A DNA stretch of 64,000 nt from Lepidodermella squamata. Taxonomy: Eukaryota > Animalia > Gastrotricha. Under the pieces are notes generated by a model. That model was given only the letters and a program-made list of their open reading frames with translations. It did no database searches and was not told the DNA's origin. The stretch spans positions 62,001 through 126,000 of the forward strand of contig JBLDXI010000014.1 in NCBI GenBank assembly GCA_047495785.1. The letters run 5' to 3'. The stretch's first letter is position 1, and the number at the start of each line of letters is the position of its first letter. Made by a program: the position numbers and the translations under genes. Shown here piece by piece: positions 9,868 to 50,596 of the stretch.

Positions 9868-11713
9868 TCAAGAATTGCCGCCAGAGGGAGGCGGCGCGTT
9901 TCCGCGTCGCGGATCGAAGCGAACCGGTCGATTTGACGCGGCGCCACCTGCCGATGAAGACGACGAGACCGCTGCGGCGAGAGACCGCGAGAATACCATC
10001 GTCCGACCGACTGAATGTCCTGAAGCGGCCGGACGACTCGACGCAGCCGGCGGAGCGTCAGAGTCTTTGAGACGCCGGTCAGTCTCGTCCTCGCGTGGCT
10101 TCCGGTCGGCAGGCTCACGGTCGAAGTCTCGTTGCCTCGACGACCCGCTACCACCCCGGGCTCCTGAACTGCCAGCAGATGACGGTTTGTTGCCGCCCGA
10201 GCTTTGAGATGTCGAATCCTGACGTCGAGACTGGCCACCCCCAGCCCCGCCACCGCCACCGCCCCGATTAGCACCTCCTCGCTGTTGAGGCTTCGGCCTG
10301 CTCGACCTGTCTTCGTCGTCATCGGCAACTTCCACGAAACGCAAATTTTGCCCGGGCGCAACTGGCTCACTTGCTTTCGGCTGATCGTGCTGACGAGGCG
10401 TTTTCGGGGCCGCAGATGCTGCTGATCGGTCTGAACGTTGATTGCCAGCAGGCCGGCGGTTGGTATCATCCCGTTCATCTGTCGTCGCCGGTCGAGCAGA
10501 GCCAGCCGGGCGTGGTTTCCGTTGATTTTCCGACCTGTTTTGCTGCCTATTGTAACCACCTTCATCTCTTATCGGCTGCTCGATAGAAGTCTGTTCCTTG
10601 GCTGATGTCGATCCCGCTGCCGGTTTCGACGCGATTTTTACGCTTCCGACCGCTGGAGCCGCGGCAGCTTGCTCCTTCGCTTTCCTGTTCGCTCCTCCCC
10701 GATCGCGTTTCCTATCTCGCCGTTTCTTCTTCTGCTCAGGCGCGGCTTCCGACTGATGCTGCTTGGCTTGCTTTGCCAGAATGCGCCTCGCTTCCATCTT
10801 CCCGCGGCGACGTTGTTCAAGAAACTCCACCAGTGGCGACTTCTTCTTCGAGAAATCATCTTCCGATCGGAGCCTTGCTTCAATTTCACGCAGCATTTCA
10901 TCAGGGTTCAACTGAGCCACCTGCTCGCTATTGCCGGGTATGATTGTCGAACGCGAATTAGACAACTTGTCGCAGAATAATTTGAAATCATCGTCGTCAA
11001 TGAGGGTTCCCTGAAACACAAACAAAACAAATGCTCGATAAGAAATGTGGCTGAAATTGACGACCAACAAACATCCAATTCAATTTTCAGAGCTCTAAGT
11101 GTCTCTATTCAAGATCTTCATGACATCCGACCTTTTAAGAGAATAAGCAAGGATTTTTCTAACCTTCAAAGTGTTCAGCTTCTTAGGTTTTCTTGCAAGT
11201 GAAGGATCAGGCAGCATGCCGGATTTTTCGACACCATCTGGTTCAGCGGCTAAAAACTGGTATGAACCATCTGCAGCTCGATCCGGAATGCGCTGGTTAG
11301 GGGCGAACTCGACCAAAGCTGGGTACATGTGGCCTTTGGCATCGGCGAATTCGTAGCCGTCCCACCGCGCGCATACACCATACACGTCATCAAGCTTTCG
11401 AAGGCCGACATAGGCCCTACAGCACGCAGCCTCGGCTCCAGCACTAAATACACACACCAAGTTGAACTTATACTGGATAGTATTTCATTTCAGCAAACCT
11501 GTAATCAGCTTTGCAATAATGAAAATAACGATGCTCGGGCAACGGCGAGATGACGGATAGAAACTCATCGGCCGTTAAGGTGGGTGGTAGGTGTCTGAAG
11601 ACAATTTTATTTGTCATCATCGACGCGCCACACCCGCTGCGGGCATTCGCTTGAGCTTCACCATCCCTAGAATCTTTATCGCCATCGACCTTTCTGTCAC
11701 TTCCTCGAACCAT
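9868..11713 (-). CDS. UPF3: Regulator of nonsense transcripts 3 (UPF3/SMG-4), 3 coding exons
   Basis: KIVFRHLPPTLT...PLPEHRYF, RAYV...WDGYEFADAKGHMYPALVEFAPNQRIP and GTLIDDDDFKLF match the UPF3 RRM-like domain and adjacent helix. A long charged low-complexity tail follows. Confidence 0.93.
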
Positions 11714-36661: not shown

Positions 36662-37861
36662 CGAGAAATACTAAATTAACATTTTACTCCGCTACCGAAT
36701 CTAAACCAATCCTAAACAAGGAAATGAAAACAGATTGATAATCGAGGAAAGATAAAGTGCGACATATATGTTACCGATGAATTAAAGCTATTGAGTAATC
36801 GTTTAATTCATGATATGAGGAGACTCGAGATAATCAGGCGCTAAATTTGGGCTGTAAAAGTTTAAACCTAATGATATCGAGGCCTGAAGACTTGAAAACA
36901 GTGCCTTGAGCGACATTCTTAATAATTATAACGCCATCCAATTCTCAGAATCAATAAGCTTCGCTCCTAAACTTCAAGCAGTCATTCGATTCCATCATCC
37001 ATCACCATTTCTAGGCATAAGCTCCTGTCCTGAATAAATTACTTTTTCTTAATTTCAGCTGCAGAAACGCAGATGACTTAGTAATAAATGAAAAGTATAC
37101 CACCAATAAATAAATTATTGTAAGCAATCATCCGCAGTCAAATGCCCACTGCTCAGCTAGGTTATAGGTTGGTTTCGAGTTGGTTCATATAAAAACCTGA
37201 TGATCAATGAAACGCTAAACAATGCAAATCTGAGAAGAATCTTCAGGTAAGTCATTGAAAAACAAACGAACATATCAAAGTTGAAGCTGCAATACAGAAA
37301 AGGAAGCAATTAGGAGTACGTAGCAGAATGACAGAAAAACAGTTGCCTCTTGTCGGTACAGAAAAAGCGCTAAACATACTATTCATCACGCGCAAAAGAC
37401 AACAACGACACGTTTCAATGAGCGCGTGTTTTGACCGCAGAACAACTGGCGATTCCATCACGGCAAATAATAGTACATTCCTTACCGTTCTACAGGTAGT
37501 CGGCCTGAGTGCTGCGCTGGAGAACTCCTCTAAAATTGCCGCCTATACTTTGGTGAAGGATAAATTTTTAAAAATATTTTAATAAATATTCTTTATTAAA
37601 AATAACATTTAACATATAGTACATTTCACTATAATTTTTAATGAGCATAATTGATTGCATGCTTTTAAGCAAAAAATGGTTGCGCACGGATCGCACGTTC
37701 TGCATTCTGCACTGACTTTATTGAGCAGAAGGCTTCCTGCAGAATATATCGCCTTACGCTTCGCTTTGCTTGCTTCGCTGTGGCATAATGAGCTCGGATG
37801 CGTTGGATAACAGCTCGGATAGAAAAATGAAATGTTGCCTATGGTTGTCATTTGGCCCGGC

Positions 37862-37904
37862 CTAACCCTGGCTAACCCTGGCTAATCTGGCGAACCCTGG
37901 CTAA
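37862..37904. repeat. Short tandem array of a CTAACCCTGG decamer (~4 imperfect copies)
   Basis: cctaaccctggctaaccctggctaatctggcgaaccctggctaa read directly. Confidence 0.75.
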
Positions 37905-38009
37905 AGCCATAGTAGCCATAATTCAAATTTTCGAAATGCCCTTGTGCTTTTATTTTTCAATTTAAATAAAAATTCTCGGCTTCCATTGAAACCCGGGGAT
38001 TTTTGTGTA

Positions 38010-39780
38010 TAAAACCCGTCCGTGTCGCCTGCCTGACTGAGCCACAAACCCGAACATCAAATTTTCCATGGCTAGTGACCTTGATCCTGTACTCTGTTGA
38101 CTTATCGAAAAAGCTATAGACAAACTGAGTGAGTACAAGGCTACGACCGGATTCGACGGCATTCCCGAGTGCATCGTCAAGATGGCAAAGCCCTCAATTG
38201 CTCGGCATCTCACAGCGCTCTTCAACTTGGCCATTCGAGATGGCGTCTTCATCAGCGATTGGAAAACGGCTATTGTCACACCGCTGCATAAGGCCGGATC
38301 AAAGGCCGAGATTGGAAATTGTAGGCCGATCTCGATCACTTAACCGCTAGCTCGTACGTTCGAGCGTTGCCTAGCAACACAGCTGAAAGATCATTTTTTG
38401 CGAGCGATCGAATTCTTAACACCGGCGCAACACGGATTTCGTTAATACCATTCGACAGACACCTGCTTGGCGTTGTTTACTGAACGCTGGCGGCATCTGC
38501 TTGTCAAAGGAAACGTGGCTGGAGCCGTGCCGATCGGCTTATCGAAAGCGTTCGACACGCTCCACCTCGATGAAATTATCGAATCTCTCCGCTGGTGTAA
38601 CGGAATTGTCAATTCGCCTATTGATACTACTTGAGTAATCGCCGCCAAACTACGAAAATCAACGGCGAAGCATCCCCGTTCGAGTCGATTGATTGCGGTG
38701 TGCCACAAGGATCGGTCAGTACTGATAGTGATACTGAGACTGTTTTATTTTGCAATTGTCTTTCAACATTTAGCAATTAGGAATTAATAATACGTTAACA
38801 AGCCTCACCACAGTAATCGTGAATTTTTCCAAGTCAGCCGTACATTTAACACATTTCAAGAGTGGGCCACTCATGTTCAAAATTTATGTAAACGACCTGC
38901 CTTTGATTTTAAGTAGATACGGCATAGCTCAATACGCTGACGACTGACGACGTTAGCATTTTCTTTGGTTCGAAAAACATCAACGAACTACAGGCTGCTC
39001 TACAACTGGAACTCAGCAGGTTGTGTATATGGCTGAAGCAGAACAGCCTGGCGGTAAATGGTAAAAAATCGCAGTTTATGCTGCTCGCTGCTCAAGCCGC
39101 ACCTTTCGACAGCACCCGACTTCAAGGTCACCATCGGTGGCGTTCGGATTAGGCCTTCTGAATCTATGAACACGCTCGGCTTCCATATTGAAAATAAGCT
39201 CTTATTCGACGAACACGTCGAGATGGCGAAGGGCAAGGCTCGAAAGGGCTTGTTCGCTCTCAAACAAGCTGTCGATGCTGGAGTTGATCGCAAAACTACC
39301 GTCATGATGACCAACGGTCTCGTTGTCAGCCACCTGAATTATGAATTATGGCGACATTACCCTTGCGCTCATCCGGTTCCGCTTCGGCATCGACTTGGAT
39401 GGCTTACTGTCAACCAGAAACATGTGGTACACCTATGCACATGCATATGGAAGAACCTGCACAAGATGGCGCCGGATGACTTCAAGTCGATATTAAAACT
39501 GAATGATCGCAGCCAATAACTGTCGCAATTTCGAGCCAATGTTCAAGCCGACCTTCACGACCGAGCACGGCCAACTGCCCTCGGTCGTTCACGACGCGCG
39601 GTCTGCAAAGGCGTGTCGCCTACGCACATTTCAATAGTCAATAATTATATTTTGTATTTTTGCTCAATTTGTTGTTTCTGATTATGTTGTTAGATTTTCT
39701 ACAATTGCATCGCACTTTCGAAGATTTAATGTCATCTGAATTGTCCTATACATCTGCAACCTGTCCTACAATTATTCTTT
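38010..39780 (+). mobile_element. Degraded L2/Crack-like LINE (RT domain and 3' UTR) with an internal insertion
   Basis: Frame-broken RT motifs GFDGIP...LFNLAI..GVFISDWKTAIVTPLHKAG...RPISI, LSKAFDT, GVPQGS, QYADD and LRHRLGWL. A ~145-nt insertion at ~38718-38863 splits GVPQGSV/GPLMF. Boundaries approximate. Confidence 0.85.
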
Positions 39781-39859
39781 ATTCTTTCACGTTCGCGATC
39801 AACAGTGGCGAAATGGTTATAGGTACAACATGTTAAGGCGCCTCACTACTGACGTCAAA

Positions 39860-40420
39860 TAGTTATTAATGTCAAGCTATTTAACATAGTTTTTAAATTT
39901 TTATGAGAATTATTAATGTAATCAGTAGGTATTGAGTTCCAGAGAGGCCTCACACGTCTAACAAAGGAAGATTTATAAGAATCAATATTTGCAGGTATAC
40001 AACTAATTTCATGAGCAACGGCTCTGCGGCGACTAGAAATATAAAAAAAAATCGTAAAAATTACGATCAACAGTATTCTGGTACATTTTGTGACAAAGAC
40101 ATATATCTCTGATGAGACGACGTTCCTCTAGTTTTTGTAAGTCAATAATTTTGCTTGTTGCTCATAATAGTCGAGTCCATCAACAGAGGTAAAATATAAT
40201 GTTCCCGGAAATAACAGCATTTTGGTGCAATTAATTTGGATTCTTTCCAGATCGTCAATATCAGTTAAACAAATAGGTGATGATACAGCTGGGCAATATT
40301 CAACAAGAGGATGAATAACGTGGGTTTTAAAGGCTTTCAGTTGCATATCTTGAGATTTAAAGCATTTGTATATATTTGTAATATAGCATTGGTAACGCGG
40401 GCACACTTGTCAATCACCTG
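39860..40420 (-). mobile_element. CR1-like LINE 3' fragment (degraded)
   Basis: FKTHVIHPLVEYCPAVSSP...DIDDLERIQ and SFVRRVRPLWNSIP resemble post-RT motifs of CR1-group ORF2. Boundaries approximate. Confidence 0.7.
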
Positions 40421-40479
40421 TATTATAAGAAAAATTGAGCTGGCTTGTACTCTTTTGACACGCCACAATATTTAATATT

Positions 40480-41070
40480 CAAAGACTTAGGCCTAGAGCG
40501 TTCATGTTCTGTTTGAAGTTGTAAGTGTCAAATTACGGAGGAAAGCAGTTTATCGGTAAGTCGTTCCAGGTCGTTGCGACGGTGTTTTGTAGCGTTGCAA
40601 AAATTTTAGTGTCATGGCCGGCTCTCTGTCAACGGTTGATGTGCGTTGACGGGCAAGCGAAGTTTCACTTAGAAGCGATTTTGCTTTGCCGAATCCCAAG
40701 ATTTTACGTTGTTTGCGTATGAGTTTCAAGTGGTCGCGGATTTGTTTCGTTCCTTTTCTGCCGACGATGACTTAGTAAAAGTAACGCATAGTGCCGCCAA
40801 ATCGTCTTTCGCCTCGGGGCATTATCATCTTTACCCCTATTTGGCGGGTGAAGCGTTCTTGGACGGACTGAACGTGGTCCAGTGTGCTTGCGACGCGTGG
40901 GCGTAGCCGATCATGCCAGACTCGAGTATTGGCATGGCGTGTGTTTTGAACGCGTTTCCCAGTTGCCATGGCGCTAGGAATGTGCGGAGCCGAAGCGGCT
41001 GGGACACAATCTTGTTAGCTCGCGCTACCAGTTTCGTGACACATGGCTCCATAGAAAGTGCCGGGTCGAG
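40480..41070 (-). mobile_element. Second CR1-like LINE 3' fragment (degraded)
   Basis: VARANKI...AFKTHAMPILE...VQERFTRQI...TVATTWNDLP across shifted frames. Boundaries approximate. Confidence 0.65.
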
Positions 41071-42226
41071 AGTGAGACCCAGTAGGACAGTCGGGTCGCT
41101 AGTCGTTTGTTGTTTCTCGGGCGCTGCCGGTACCCCTGCTTTCCGTCAGCCACTTCGAAATCTTGGTTAGCTGAACTTTGTGTCGACCCTCTTTTCCATA
41201 GAGACATGATTGGCACCCACCCAGGCTGTGGCCAGCCTGCTGTAGATAAAACGTAGAAGATGAGTAGTGTGGAGTCAAACACAGTTTGCCTTGGAGTCTA
41301 ATTCAGTTCCGGAGTAAGTTTTGGCTAATTTAGTGACTCTCTTTTCGGAGTCGAATTTGGCTTAGTATATATATTATCGGAGTCAGAAATGAGTAGAAAT
41401 GCGGAAAAGAGGAGTCTACATGACTCCGAAGTTAACGTTTGGACCACACTGTCCTTGAGGGAAATTATGGGGGCCTGCAGCGTAAGAAAATGTCGCGCGC
41501 GCATCACGCCGTTCGGAACGAAAAAAAACACCTCTTTTTTAATTTTAACATGCGGACTAAAATACCCACAGTTTTCAATATTAATATCCGCAGTAAATCT
41601 GTGAATATTATGTCTGATGCTAAAAATACTGTTTGTGTTTTTATTATATGTCAAATTCAAAATATTACAACTTAGGCGGGTAAAAAAACCTAGCTTAGAT
41701 TTCTCTTTCCTACCTTGAACCTACTACATATTTCGAGCCACTACTAAAGGACAAATAAAGATCGAAACGCCATTATTGTCAATTGTGACCCCTGGAAGTT
41801 TCGCCCAGTAGAAAATGTGAGGCAGCTGTTAGATCATGGGTAGCTCGACGATGAGTTCACTGTTCACTCCTTGTCACTAAGGGCAATCCATCCGAGGTTC
41901 AGCGTTCAGCCTCTAGAGTTCGCTGCAGGCGGAGCTCGTTTCAGCTTCCCTTAGTCTACTTATTTATATCTTTATCTTCCTATTTTTCGGCAATCAGTAA
42001 CTTCCGACTTTCTTATTTCTTACTTGTTTGAATTTATCGAATCCAATCTTAACCAGGTGAATACGCGTGCTGTGACTAAGGATACGTATCGTTTACTTCG
42101 CCCTTTGCTCCTTGTCCCCGTCAGTGAATTATTTAACCGTGAAACTGGTAGCAGCTGATGTCAAGCAGAACATGGCTTGATGTGTTGGCGTATCAAGCGA
42201 CAATCTTTCACAATTTTATTTGTAGG

Positions 42227-43170
42227 ATGATTCCAAAATTTTTATTTGTCATTATCGCCGGTGCTCTTGTCTCGGCGTTGATCATTGTTCAGCTATATGG
42301 CACCGAAACTAATTTGATTACGTCACTTTTTATCGAGGAGCGCCTCAAAGTACCTGATTATCCCGTGAGAGTAGGATGGTTAATTTTTGCGACGGGTAAA
42401 TACATTCAGTTCGCTGAGATATTTATAAAGTCTCTCCGCAAGCACTTTGATTGCCCTATTTGCAATGTCACTTACATTATTTTCACGGATGGAAGTCTCT
42501 CGCATCGGTCTGCTGCGTCAAAAGATATTAAAATAGTACGGTTGCTGATAACACAAAAGTTGTGTTTTCAATTCTGAAAATCGTTGTCTTTTCAGATTTC
42601 GTACAAATTGAAGGGCTGGCCTTACGATACGCTGAATAGGGTTCATGCCTTTCGTGAGGCAAAGTCTCTACTAGAAGGATATGATTATTATTTGGCGATT
42701 GATGCTGATATGCGTGCCCGTAGTCGAATTGGTATGGAGATTCTGGGAGACAGAGTTGCAACCCTCCATCCCGCGTTTGCTGACAATAGAATTCGAGGAA
42801 CGTTTGAGAACAACACGCAGTAAGCTTTATCGCCTTCTCCTTAATTGCTTGGCGATATTGTTTTGTCATCAGCTCATCTGCCTACGTCGATCCTTCTGAA
42901 GGCTCGCATTACTTCGCGGGAGGTTTTTACGGGGGACGCGCTGAAGAATTCTGGAAGCTATGTGATGGTGTTTCACAGCTCATTGACTCCGATCTTGCCC
43001 AAGGTTTTGTTGCAGTCTGGCACGATGAGTCTTATCTCAACCGTTACTTAGCAACTAACCCGCCGTCGGTGATTTTAACCCCCGCGTATTGCTATCCTGA
43101 TCTCTGGAAATTACCCTACGAAAAGAAGATCGTGGCTAGGACCAAGCGCCATTCCGTGGCTAGATCATAA
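42227..43170 (+). CDS. Glycosyltransferase family 6 (ABO/Forssman-like alpha-1,3-GalNAc/Gal transferase), 3 exons, 276 aa
   Basis: Exons 42227-42535, 42596-42819 and 42873-43170. N-terminal signal-anchor. Motifs FATGKYIQF, YIIFTD, GWPYDT, IDADM (DXD), VATLHP, YFAGGFYGG, AVWHDESYLNRYL, ILTPAYCY. Confidence 0.93.
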
Positions 43171-43353
43171 TTTTCTACTCATCATGCCAAGTCCTTTCAA
43201 ATTTCTCTTTCAGTGATAACTGCTCAAAGAATTTCCATGCTTCTAATACATTTTTAATGCTCCAGTCTATTGATCATTTCAACCGTAATAGATTTTTATA
43301 TTTTTATTTTATCCCTTTCGGTTTATGGCTGAATCCATTTCAAGTTGTGCGTT

Positions 43354-44724
43354 ATGGACTTGAGTTTGGCTTCATCTCACTTCGGTGGCGCAATAGACAA
43401 CGATGACTTTCCACTCCCAGCCTTTCCCATTGCAAGCCCGTCTCCGACTGATTTGTCGCCTGGATTACCTAAATCAGAGTCAGATCAATTTATTTGTGAA
43501 GTTTGCTCGAAAAAATGCATATCACGAGAAAACCTTCGCAACCATCGCCGACACGTGCATCCTAAAAAGTTTTACGCCTGCCCTAAGTGTCAGAAAGTTT
43601 TCAAATCAACTTCATCACTGCGACGTCACTCCTCCGTGCATTCACCGGAAATAGGAATATCTCAGCAATGTCAACAATTTTCTGCTCCAAATATCTGTTT
43701 ATTGTGCTCGAAATCGTTCAAAACACCCAGTGCTTTAGATGTCCATAAAAGCAAAGTTCACAGCGAAATGAGCGAAATTATGTTTGTTAAAACGGATTCC
43801 TCGGCGCCATCTTCGTCAGCTTCGACTGCATCAAACTCGGCGTTAGATTTAGGATCGATTTTCAGCTCTACTGATTTTCAACATCACAATTTGCCCGTTT
43901 TTCCCGGTTTCGAGAGCCTCGACGGCGAGGAGCCTGTCGATTTGTCGAAAAATCAGAAACTTGGCAATCACAGCACGTCGACAATACCCTCTCCGCCACT
44001 GTCCGTTCTTTCAATCAGCCCAGTTTATACGAGAGCAAATTCAGCCAATGTTGGCTTGCTTTCTATTAAAAACCCGGATGGCACTGTTTCGTGTGGTTTT
44101 TGTGGTAAGGCTTTCCAGTCGAAATCGCTGCTATCGTACCATAGACGCAACGTTCACCCGAGTGTGCTTCATTCGTGCTCGGATTGCGGCAAGGCGTTCA
44201 AATCGAAATCTCACCTGCGCCGCCACGGCCGCGTGCATTCGGGCGAACGACCATTTCCGTGTTCTCTCTGCTCACGCCGCTATTCAGACGCGCGACACGT
44301 CCGTGAACACCAATTCAAATGTCACGGTATCGATAACAAAGTGAATGGAATGGCTGCAGGGCGTAGTGATAGAGCCTTGGATCGGTGAGTTGAAATTTGT
44401 TGTAGAGCTTGGATTATTTAATGAATTTTCAATAAGATTCTTGTTGGCGTTTTTCGGTCATCATTTACACCCTGTTCCCTGTTGTTTTTCAGAGGCAGCT
44501 TGAATTATTGTTCAATATGTTCCGAAACCTGTTTGGACCAAAATCAGCTTCAACGACACGTTATCAAACATCATTTGCGATTGTCACGAAACAACGAAAT
44601 AACACCATCGAAATTTTTCGTATCTTGCCCGTTCTGTCGCTATGCTGTGAAGCCCCCACGAACGCTGGGCTGGCACATGCGGCGACACTCGCGACCGAAG
44701 AAGCAATCGATTTCAACAAAGTGA
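43354..44724 (+). CDS. C2H2 zinc-finger protein (~8 fingers, 2 exons)
   Basis: Repeated CxxC-x12-Hxxx(x)H motifs and an HSGERPF linker. A GT-AG intron after ...ALDR joins to GSLNYCSIC...; stop at 44724. Confidence 0.88.
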
Positions 44725-45707
44725 TTACTTGTTACCGGAAAATTCTCCGTCCTGCCTGCTTATTCTTACGTTGCGCTGACCTTGCAATTCTCTGCAATAT
44801 CGGTCGATAGAATCCTCGAAATTGGCAAATCGATCATTCCTACTCCTAGTCTTCCGTTCCACTTGATATCTCCCTCATGATTTCGCAAGGTGTTTTACCA
44901 ACCAAGTCGCCGTTCTCCAATCAATCGATCAATCTGCGATTTTGCGTCCTCCGTGAACAACGAAATTTACTATACGGTGCTGTATAAATATGCCCTTTAA
45001 TGTTGCTACTGGTTTAATTGTTTAATTGTGCCTTTCTTACATCTGAAAGTGGCCAATTTTGTTGTGCAAATGTAGATAGAAGGAAAGAGAGAGACATTTA
45101 TTTGCGCTAAATTTTGCTATTTTGATTTACCTAATTTTCTCCAGTCTTCAGCTAACTCGGTAATTTTTTGACAATTGATGATAAATCCGCGAATATTAAT
45201 GCTAGAGATATACTTGTTGATGTTCAATTATAATCAGCCTTCGTCCTTTGTGAAAATTATTCGGTTTTTTCTACTTACCAACTTTCTATTAATCTCTTTC
45301 GGCTGTTGGAAATCGTTGCTTTTCTACTTTACACGTCGTAATTGTTCACATATATTTATGCAATCAAATTATTCTGATATGCAAACGTAGGAATACGCGA
45401 ACGGAACTGCTGGTGAAAAGTAATGTTTTGGGCAAGCATATTTCAGCTGCTGATATAACCGTCTTATCATCACTTTAACTTCTTCGTTGTACTGCTCTTC
45501 CAAAAAAGAACACAACTCCTGACTGCGATTTTCTTGATTCCTAAATTGAACCAATTTTGAAATTCTTGATACGCGCGCTTGCAGCTAAAACTATAAATGC
45601 ATCGTGAACCTAAATAAGATTCAAATTTGAGAGAAAAATAAAGGAAAATTTGACGATTACAAAAACCAGTCTTGCTTGATAATTTTAGGCGATTATATTT
45701 GCCTTGA

Positions 45708-47990
45708 ATGAGTGATAACGCGAACTCAACGCTGAATAGCAGGCGGTCGTTTCACTTCGTCGACAGTACCGGGCAAAGCCGAGTTGCAGATTTGACCCCG
45801 GCACATGTGATCAGCAATGCCTCGGGACACCGAGCCATTTTCATCACTCACCAACCGTCCAGTTCTAGGAACGTAGTCACTATATATAAGCAACTGCAGC
45901 CATTAACTGAGGCATCAGACCCTTCGGAAGTTGAAGTTAGACAGGATCCGGCGAAAATTAAAGATGGGAAGCCGAAATTGGGACCATCAAACTACCCTTA
46001 CGCTTGTTCAGCCTGCTCAAACCGCTTCCGGAATGCCTTAGCTCTGATGAAGCACTCGAATAAAGCGCACTATGAAAGCAATCGGAAAGCGGTAGAAGCT
46101 CCGAAAGTGAAACCATTTGTTCTGAAAATTAACCCGTTGAGATCTCTCCGCTCTGCTCCATCAGGTCGAATTCTGTTTTCTCTGCTGGAGACGAATCCTC
46201 GACCTCCTGTTCAACCCGCCGTGAAAGATGCAGATATTAATGATAATACTAAGGGTACCTACAAATGCCGGTTTTGTACTGGTGACAAAGTAGTCAAGTT
46301 CAATTACCGGTCCCATTTGATCCAGCACTATAAATTTCACCGAAGGTTAGCTATGGCTGATCGTAATAAAAAACTGGTTTGCGCTGTTTGCCAGCGGTTA
46401 TTTGTCAACCGATCTTCGCTTTTCGTCCATATGCGAAGTCAACACCCTCTGCCGAGAGGACCTGGCGGGCTAGGAGTAGTCGAAATTAACACGGCCTACC
46501 CGATGGAATGCTTGCTATGTTTTAAACGATTTCGAGATGAAGATGAGCATATGAATCATTGGAAGTCAGCTCACCAGGAGAAGCGCGTTTATCGCTGCAT
46601 TGAGGTTTGCAATTTATATCTACCAGGTGCCGAGCCAAAATATTGTTTTGCAGTGTTCACCCCCTCGTGATTTTCGAAGTTCAGCGGAACTTGATTTACA
46701 CCAAAGATCTCATACTAAAACTAAAAATTACGGTAGGTATAATTGACAATTTTGGAAGCTTAAGTTGAAGAACCCAAATTAAATTAGAGTGCCTGAATTG
46801 TAAGCGTAAGATGTCTTCAAAATCGAATCTAAACCGGCACATGATTCTGATTCACGGTACTGAAGAACAAAAATCTCGTTTGGTCGAAAAGGCGACATCT
46901 TCTGCCATTGCGGACGTCGAGGAGGAGCTTACTTCGGATCGAAATTCAATTACATGCGTAATCTGCTGCCGGAAATTTGCTAATTTGAACGAGCTCATCG
47001 AACATCGCCGGCTGCGACACAGCGATGGAAACGACCGGCCGTGGCCTTATGCTTGCCACAAATGCTCTCAGCGCTTTCAATACCAAAGCCAGCTGGCGTT
47101 CCACCTGAAAACTGCAAAAAATCACAAAAATGTTATCAGCAACGAATTTTCTGTCCCAAAAATAGTTTCTCAGCCGAAGCCTCCACGACCTCTATCTCCA
47201 CCTGAAATGTTTTCAATTGACCTGAGTGCAAACACTCAGGAAGAAATTGAAGCGGCCGAAGCTCTGAGGCGAAGTAGATTGATTGATTTACCTAACGAAA
47301 CGGAACCAATTTCAACCCCTCCTGCTCCGTCGCCAGGTCTAACACAAAACCTGCTGGACATGGGCGATGAGTCTTGGATGATTCCTCTGCTGCCAGTTGG
47401 ACGTTTCCTTGAAGGTGCGATTATTTACATTTTGAAGATTAGCTTATCATTTTTGGGTTAAGACTCGGCATCTGGAATGGAGGGCGTTTTTAACGCTGCT
47501 CGAGCTGACCTGGCTACCCCAACTGCTCTAGATCTCGATGTTTTACCGCCGAGCTCGATTCACGGCGAACTTGAGGCAGAAGCGATCTCAAATCCATGTC
47601 CTGTAGCTCAAGCGGACGGTTCGTTTTCGTGCAATGTTTGCTCCAAGGTATTCAGATTTATTTACCTTGATTCCTACTATTATATTTTAATTTCAGAATT
47701 TCGGCAGGCTAGGCGATGCGAAGCGACATATTCAGGTTATACACGTTGAAGAGCGGCCTTTTGCCTGTGATGTGTGTAAAAAGACGTTCAAATGGCGGCA
47801 TTCTTACGTTGATCATCGGAGAATTCATTCAGGCGAACGGCCGTATGTATGTGAAATTTGCGACGCTGCATTTACCGCTTCTGGTAACCTGATGCGACAT
47901 AAGAAAAACACGCATGGCATTGGGCATCATCAATCCTCCGCTGTAAGGGCGGCAATCAAGCCACAGAACCTAACCACCGGTGAATTATGA
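45708..47990 (+). CDS. C2H2 zinc-finger protein (~11 fingers, multi-exon)
   Basis: ORFs 45708-46670, 46811-47461, 47477-47749 and 47772-47990 join via short introns. Many C2H2 motifs and an HSGERPY linker. Confidence 0.88.
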
Positions 47991-48863: not shown

Positions 48864-50596
48864 ATGAAGTCATTTAAGCCTTACCTTATGAGACTTTTCA
48901 ACATGGGAATCTCTGAAAAAGTTTTTCTTAGGGATTGGAAAGCATCAATTGTGACCCCTCTTCACAAGTCAGGAAATAGAACAGATGTCGCCAACTATCG
49001 CCCGATCTCTATCACATCGCCGGTTGCTCGAACGTTCGAACGATGCTTAGCTTTTCAACTAAAAGCTCATCTCTCTAAGTTCTAAGTTTTGGTCGCCATC
49101 GCAGCATGGCTTCCGGGAAAAGCACTCAACTGACACTTGCGTAGCTGAGTTCACTGAGGATTGGCGGCAATCTATGTGTAATGGCAAGGTTGTTGCTGCT
49201 GTTTCTATCGACTTATCGAAGGCTTTCGATACACTCAACCACGCGGGCATTATCGAATCTTTTCGTAGCGCCGGCCTATCACCGTCGGCATTGCAACTGA
49301 TAGAAAACTACCTTCAAGGTCGCCAACAAGCAACTAAGGTCAACAACGAATTGTCTTCATTCGAATCGGTGAATCTCGGCGTTCCACAGGGATCCGTACT
49401 TGGACCCCTAATGTTTACGGTTTACGTCAACGAATTGTCAGCAGTTGTTACTCGGTGCAGAATAAAGCAATACGCCGACGATATCACAATTTACTTTTCA
49501 AGCAGAAATGTCAATGAATTACGATCAGTTCTACAGCAAGAGATGAATCGTGTTTGCTCATGGCTCAGCAGCAACTCTTTGGCAGTTAATGGGAAAAAGT
49601 CGCAGTTTTTGCTTTTGAAATGTGCTATGCCATCCGCGCCGGATTTTTCCATCACTATCGGCGACACAGTTATCGGACCATCAAACGTTATGATCACTCT
49701 TGGCTTCACCATTGACTGCAAACTTTCCTTCAAAAAACATATCAAAGGTGCAAAGTGCAAAGAGCAAGGCTCGACGGGGATTGTATGCCCTCAAACTAGC
49801 TGCGAAATTCGTCGACCGAAAAACTGCCATCATGATGGCCAATGGCTTGATATTCAGCCATATCAATTACGGTGACCTAACCTTAGGTCAGGCAGCACCG
49901 ACTACTCTAGCAAAGCTTCAGTCAACGCAAGATCGTGCCGTCCGAATCATATGCGGCGCTCACTCACTCGCAGATGCGGAGCCTCTTCGCCATCGACTCG
50001 GCTGGGTCAACGTTCAACAGAAACACGCCATCCATTTGGCGACATTCATCCACAATTGCCTGAATAAACAAGCACCGGCTGCAATTCAAACACTTTTCCA
50101 GCTGAACCCGGTCGGCAGCTACTCAACACGTAACACTGAGCCAATGTTCAAGCCGACGTATTTGTCAGTTCGTGGCACGTTGAGCCTTAGCTATCGCGGT
50201 CCCGATCTCTGGAATAAACTGCCTGCCGAAGCTCAAAATGCTGAGTCAGCTGAAGCGTGCCGCTCAAATGTTTATGCTTATTTTTACGAAAGAAATTCCA
50301 CTGGTTTAGGCCTATGATAAATTCGATACACTATATATTTTTATAATGCTGCGATGCTGTTTTGTTGTGATGTTATTATGATTTTGTTATTTTACTTAAT
50401 TCTCATCATTGTTCAATCGCTCACCCTTGCTATATGCACTTAATGACATTTTTTATGTCATCATTCGCCAATGTCCTATACCTCTGTAACCTGTCCTGCA
50501 ATTATCTGTTTCATTTTCAATTCACTATTGTCAAGCTGCTCTCTCTTGGGCGTCATAGCTTTGAAATAAAATAAATAAATAAATAAATAAATAAAA
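48864..50596 (+). mobile_element. 5'-truncated L2/Crack-like LINE with RT domain and (TAAA)n tail
   Basis: DWKASIVTPLHKSG...NYRPISI, DLSKAFDT, GVPQGSVLGPLMF, QYADD, GPDLWNKLP. One stop (49083-49085) and a frameshift from a 7-bp tandem duplication (49748-49761). (TAAA)n tail at 50564-50596. Confidence 0.93.

Follow-up and report, generated by a model that had tools for sequence, protein, structure and literature searches.

An expressed, intron-bearing GT6 glycosyltransferase gene in the gastrotrich Lepidodermella squamata and its likeness to DXD-type bacterial enzymes

Publications of 2014 stated that GT6 genes are absent from invertebrates, and eukaryote-prokaryote transfer was proposed to explain this gap. 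The window analysed here, a stretch of 64,000 nucleotides from Lepidodermella squamata, holds a reading frame of this family and so raises two questions: whether it is a working gene of the animal, and from where the animal obtained it. The original prediction described an intact gene with motifs of bacterial look, domesticated after a horizontal transfer.

Translation of three pieces on the forward strand gave a three-exon GT6 gene of 276 codons at 42227-43170. Exon 1 (42227-42535, codons 1-103) carries the start codon and a signal-anchor, then a short linker, and opens the catalytic domain with its first strand and helix, which read VGWLIFATGKY...VTYIIFTD in translation. It is followed by intron 1 (42536-42595; 60 bp, GT..AG, phase 0) and by exon 2 (42596-42819; 224 nt), which was aligned to human ABO and to BoGT6a of Bacteroides ovatus and encodes GWPYDT, a DAD motif at 42701-42709 and the His of TLHPAF. 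Intron 2 (42820-42872; 53 bp, GT..AG, phase 2) interrupts a His codon, and exon 3 (42873-43170) supplies YFAGGFYGG, WHDES (43018-43032), a C-terminal Lys (43144-43146) and the stop codon TAA (43168-43170). Contigs from two public sequencing runs were mapped to positions 41000-46000 of the window. A 734-nt contig from run X1 (public, 2015; its RNA type is a guess) covers 42371-42535, 42596-42819 and 42873-43216, with both introns exactly removed, and reaches through a 3' untranslated region at 43171-43216. Because this contig lacks both introns at the predicted GT..AG borders, the gene is transcribed and spliced as modelled; the intact frame with two introns claimed beforehand was thereby confirmed at its exon joints, and the objection that the gene might not be expressed was disposed of. 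An AG acceptor also lies just 5' of the GT6 start codon, at a distance of 1 nt in the window and 5 nt in the metagenomic orthologue described below.

Upstream of the gene, on the minus strand, are filamin exons with CH domains, and downstream is the start of a C2H2 zinc-finger gene (43291-44388, plus strand; Pfam zf-C2H2). The zinc-finger piece is opened by an AG acceptor at 43290-43291, about 120 bp past the GT6 stop, and the X1 contig of this gene begins at 43290 and is preceded by 20 letters that are foreign to the window, GCGAATTTGATTTGTGTCTA. These letters and the acceptor fit a spliced leader and an operon-like pairing of the GT6 and zinc-finger genes. The candidate leader was absent from the literature searched, from the window and from the fetched loci. 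It loosely resembles the leaders of tunicates, a likeness to which no weight was given. The X1 contigs are also devoid of a 108-bp GT..AG intron of the downstream gene. Run X2 (2024, DNA) provided one unspliced contig of 2723 nt, from 41026 to 43748, which runs in one piece from an upstream repeat through the GT6 gene into the beginning of the zinc-finger gene.

The upstream repeat, at approximately 41000-41200, is present in high copy, with a DNA-run depth of 480-930 compared with about 78 in its flanks, and is represented by several variant contigs. Two joints between opposite strands in the X1 contigs (41712/41821 and 41752/41872) suggest a fold-back or inverted repeat approximately 400 bp upstream of the GT6 start. 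The gene had been described as lying next to a LINE-rich island; this was weakly borne out by the high-copy repeat and by one RVT_1 reverse-transcriptase ORF at 49174-49875. The other ORFs between 37 and 57 kb had no Pfam match, which leaves the RVT_1 ORF as the only confirmed retroelement coding remnant nearby, and a rich island was rejected on this single ORF. Rfam gave no match within the 64-kb window.

When 1.84 billion representative proteins were searched with exon 3, the best match, at 61% identity, was a gene-caller fragment on an ENA metagenome contig of 12.6 kb (L001). This contig carries an orthologue that is about 62% identical, with exons 60-68% identical to all three exons of the window and introns at 990-1043 (54 bp) and 1268-1313 (46 bp) in which the positions and phases of the window are kept. 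A C2H2 zinc-finger gene is located downstream of GT6 in L001 as well. Since intron positions, phases and the zinc-finger neighbour are shared, the gene, its introns and this neighbour are older than the split of two fairly distant species. Together with a second metagenome locus (L002), L001 provided the sole relatives found of this subfamily; a scan of JGI metagenomes returned nothing closer than 55%. The window gene is therefore a host gene, on the evidence of introns that are spliced out, linkage in a DNA contig, filamin and zinc-finger neighbours, and synteny with L001, and it represents an old subfamily restricted to the lineage of this animal. Integration in the host genome, host-type introns and expression are all three present.

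Family membership was assessed with Pfam PF03414 (Glyco_transf_6; cut-off 25 bits), which was matched by exons 1, 2 and 3 at 19, 26.7 and 68 bits, respectively, exon 1 being scored as a fragment over profile positions 75-117. Exons 2 and 3 also matched solved GT6 structures (E 2e-24). For an inventory of conserved residues, 427 GT6 domains were aligned to one profile and positions with at least 85% conservation were counted: 46 of 49 are kept in the window protein, including DxD, WHDES and the C-terminal Lys, the remaining three having changed from Y to F, from H to Y and from L to R. DAD aligns with the metal-binding DVD of ABO. Exon 3 was aligned with BoGT6a free of gaps (88.5 bits), WHDES falling on residues 189-193, the catalytic Glu (43027-43029) on E192 and the C-terminal Lys on K231; E192 and K231 are the residues characterised in published work. 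A-G-G at 42916-42924 is the equivalent of human codons 266-268 (numbered with FYYLGG as 263-268), and in the published triplet code AGG is the motif of GalNAc-specific, A-type enzymes; BoGT6a is reported as a GalNAc transferase, and a Parachlamydia GT6 enzyme is reported to be metal dependent. At the N terminus, 19-residue windows reached a Kyte-Doolittle value of 2.3, with a hydrophobic segment at about residues 5-23 and a Lys at position 4, which fits a type II signal-anchor that looks uncleaved. DXD, AGG and the anchor were thus all located where they had been placed.

Some 23 residues separate the hydrophobic segment from the first catalytic strand, and the first-strand motif starts at residue 54, the corresponding medians being 33 for the bacterial clade and 119 for the vertebrate-type clades. 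The protein thus has a compact layout, in which an N-terminal signal precedes a minimal domain of about 225 residues. As read from its sequence, the enzyme is probably active. With its single anchor and short linker, the compact catalytic domain would work inside the secretory pathway, the Golgi lumen being the probable site. The putative enzyme would be Mn2+-dependent and retaining, transferring alpha-linked GalNAc, or less likely Gal, from a UDP-sugar to a galactose-ended and possibly fucosylated glycan and yielding a blood-group-A-like or Forssman-like epitope. Cell location, donor and acceptor are predictions from sequence; GalNAc is the predicted donor because the triplet is AGG, as in the published code and in BoGT6a (YYAGG). 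That this is a functional GT6 gene of the host is held with high confidence.

Relatives of the window protein fell into three groups (B, E and O), beside the vertebrate proteins (group V). Group B is a very large set of secreted DXD-type proteins, about 250 residues long, each of which begins with an N-terminal signal; its named members belong to Chlamydiales, Candidatus Dependentiae/Babeliaceae and Verrucomicrobiota MAGs (P0170-P0287, P0404-P0451; L016-L055). A prokaryote scan with one genome per species yielded 40 loci, mostly of Chlamydiae and Dependentiae, and the nearest named genomes by exon 3 identity were those of Chlamydiales (58%), Parachlamydiaceae (54-55%) and Rhabdochlamydiaceae (54%). 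Group E consists of ENA metagenome proteins (P0121, P0100, P0312 and relatives; L015 at 10001-11170) that measure 300-430 residues and have DXD, WHDES and an N-terminal anchor. Their single-exon genes form tandem arrays on contigs as long as 3 Mb; one of these genes adjoins a BEL/Pao retrotransposon on a 1.36-Mb contig, from which the contigs are taken to be animal. Group V comprises amphibian and fish ABO-like proteins and joins group E at 98-99 SH-aLRT. Group O is made up of diverse bacterial-type proteins, most of which start at the catalytic core and have no visible N-terminal signal. GT6 relatives were also found on 251 IMG/VR viral contigs (L056-L135 among the loci), some of them 200-480 kb in length, which may belong to giant viruses or jumbo phages. 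Three proteins of about 1200-1290 residues (P0002, P0015 and P0053) each contain two separate GT6-like stretches.

Median identities of exons 1, 2 and 3 were 43, 46 and 53% to group B, 35, 31 and 41% to group E, and 34, 29 and 39% to group V, which upholds the original reading that the protein is closer to DXD-type bacterial than to vertebrate enzymes. A stem motif, [TS]PWx[AST]P[IVL][IVL]W, was present in 28 of 37 group E and 10 of 11 group V proteins and in none of 166 from group B or 148 from group O; it was found neither in exon 1 nor in the three forward frames of 36700-42230. Ten alignment columns distinguish B from V+E; at seven of them the window protein has the B state, and at none the V+E state. 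Among the diagnostic states shared with B, the Cys in HF(D)C alone is clearly derived. The branches of group B are short, and group E, too, has its best external match there; identity ranking therefore cannot settle descent, and as a proof of descent it was rejected for this reason. Two further marks fared no better. DXD had been regarded as a minority state among bacterial enzymes, yet it occurs in 410 of the 427 relatives, a similarity-biased sample that was retrieved with a DXD query, compared with NxN in 9; AGG is likewise the commonest triplet in this biased sample (297 of 427). Neither was accepted as a mark of origin. Golgi targeting, presented earlier as a gain, need not have followed a transfer, as bacterial relatives already have an N-terminal hydrophobic signal.

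For phylogenetic analysis, the window and L001 contributed their exons as six separate, unjoined rows, which weakens the trees; supports are SH-aLRT values from quick searches, and AU tests were performed in addition. With 120 rows under LG+C20+F+G4 (PMSF), a quick search placed the window clade among group O on a long stem (0.77), and with 84 rows under the same model the backbone was a polytomy. With 52 rows under LG+F+G4, each exon pair fell separately inside group B. The 52-row PMSF tree nested the window clade in B with path supports of 61-83, recovered O as one clade (SH-aLRT 77) and joined V+E with B at SH-aLRT 99. The stem branch of the window clade was long, at 0.45-0.77 changes per site. 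In every tree the window protein was placed outside the V+E clade (98-99 SH-aLRT). Constraining the window clade to group with V and E cost 29.6 lnL under LG+F+G4 (p-AU 0.125; RELL and ELW 0.047) and 5.5 lnL under PMSF, the better model (p-AU 0.35), and constraining it with the core of B under LG+F+G4 cost 6.0 lnL (p-AU 0.41). Nesting inside bacteria is thus favoured but unsupported, and the placement shifts with model and sampling. The phylogeny, proposed earlier as a check on transfer, accordingly nested the gene in bacterial group B in two trees, at supports of 61-83, and elsewhere in two others; grouping with a broad animal clade, which had been named as the opposite outcome, was never obtained as a sister relation in the ML trees, yet neither AU test rejected it.

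An ancient transfer from an intracellular bacterium is narrowly the single most likely origin, at chances that approach even without exceeding it, and bacterial origin as such is given the same weight. The donor would have been of the Chlamydiae/Dependentiae/Verrucomicrobiota type and the recipient an ancestor of this animal, with intron gain and family expansion after the transfer. The claim of a domesticated transfer stands as far as bacterial affinity, integration and expression are concerned; it is weakened by AU tests that do not reject an animal grouping. When functional host gene and bacterial origin are put into one statement, that statement is evenly balanced. Transfer could have run either way, as Chlamydiae and Dependentiae are inhabitants of eukaryotic cells, and the same data can be read as vertical eukaryotic descent, with the window gene as an old and rapidly evolving GT6 lineage of animals that is sister to the vertebrate-type clade and whose stem was absent or lost, and with the Chlamydiae/Dependentiae clade having received GT6 from eukaryotic hosts. 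Such descent is in keeping with the AU results, with the union of eukaryotic and intracellular-bacterial groups apart from other bacterial GT6, with the existence of a non-vertebrate-looking animal clade (group E) and with the age of the gene in its lineage. It is set back by the ML trees, by the low RELL and ELW weights, by the missing stem motif and by the lack of any vertebrate-type state at the ten diagnostic columns, and we consider it doubtful, if a serious contender. Introns were also compared. In human ABO, exon 7 covers everything from about codon 125 onwards, so that the introns of the window (at about ABO 173/174 and 251) lie elsewhere, and group E is intronless; the difference counts against shared introns and is neutral on vertical descent itself.

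A viral donor, either a phage or a giant virus carrying GT6, would agree with the 251 IMG/VR contigs and with the atlas look-alike clusters of similar length, which are mostly viral; it is nevertheless unlikely, the best viral identity for exon 3 (53-55%) being lower than that of Chlamydiales (58%) or metagenome proteins (60%). The one feature that would suit an artefact or a dead gene, whether by contamination, assembly chimera or an untranslated pseudogene, is the compact, bacterial-like architecture, and nothing else was found in its favour. Against it are the removal of two spliceosomal introns in RNA-derived contigs, the single DNA contig that ties GT6 to the host zinc-finger gene, the conserved synteny of the L001 orthologue, the intact frame with its conserved residues, and the lack of bacterial promoter or terminator signals above chance, so that this explanation is extremely improbable. 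Contamination was rejected on the introns, the DNA linkage and the synteny, and a pseudogene on the frame, the splicing and the 46 of 49 residues. The preferred reading, ancient bacterial transfer, can be extended to a proposal that transfer between obligate intracellular bacteria, similar to Chlamydiae or Dependentiae, and an invertebrate ancestor stands at the root of an entire GT6 family of animals, separate in origin from the ABO lineage of vertebrates. This is put forward tentatively, at clearly less than even chances; if true, blood-group-A-like glycans arose twice in animals.

Taken alone, the window protein is an ordinary member of a known, expanded family. Its locus shows a GT6 gene with introns to be expressed in an animal that is not a vertebrate, and group E is at odds with the published absence from invertebrates unless its host is a vertebrate. 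The large DXD-type clade of Chlamydiae and Dependentiae overturns the picture of bacterial GT6 as mostly NXN, within the similarity bias of the sample counted above. With better sampling, the origin of the blood-group enzyme family becomes testable.

Among known systems, the secreted DXD-type GT6 proteins of Chlamydiae, Dependentiae and Verrucomicrobiota have the highest identity to all three exons, up to 56-62%. They share with the window protein DXD, an N-terminal signal before a catalytic domain of about 225 residues, the Cys of HF(D)C and the C-terminal pattern CYPxxWxLPYEKK...K.H..R; the window gene differs in its two spliceosomal introns, its animal neighbours and its linker of about 23 residues. 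BoGT6a (PDB 4AYJ/4AYL), a blood-group-A-type GalNAc transferase, shares AGG, WHDE and the C-terminal Lys, but it is an NXN-type, metal-independent enzyme reduced to a minimal catalytic domain, whereas the window protein combines DAD with an N-terminal anchor. Group E proteins, of 300-430 residues, are encoded by single exons, have the stem motif of vertebrates and cluster with vertebrates, none of which applies to the window protein. The vertebrate enzymes (ABO A/B, alpha-1,3-galactosyltransferase and Forssman synthase) have DXD, type II topology and the Glu in common with it, and the AGG triplet is seen in vertebrate A-type enzymes; they possess a long stem with TPWxAPIVW, both of which the window protein lacks, and exon 3 scored 63 bits against vertebrate GT6 compared with 88 against BoGT6a.
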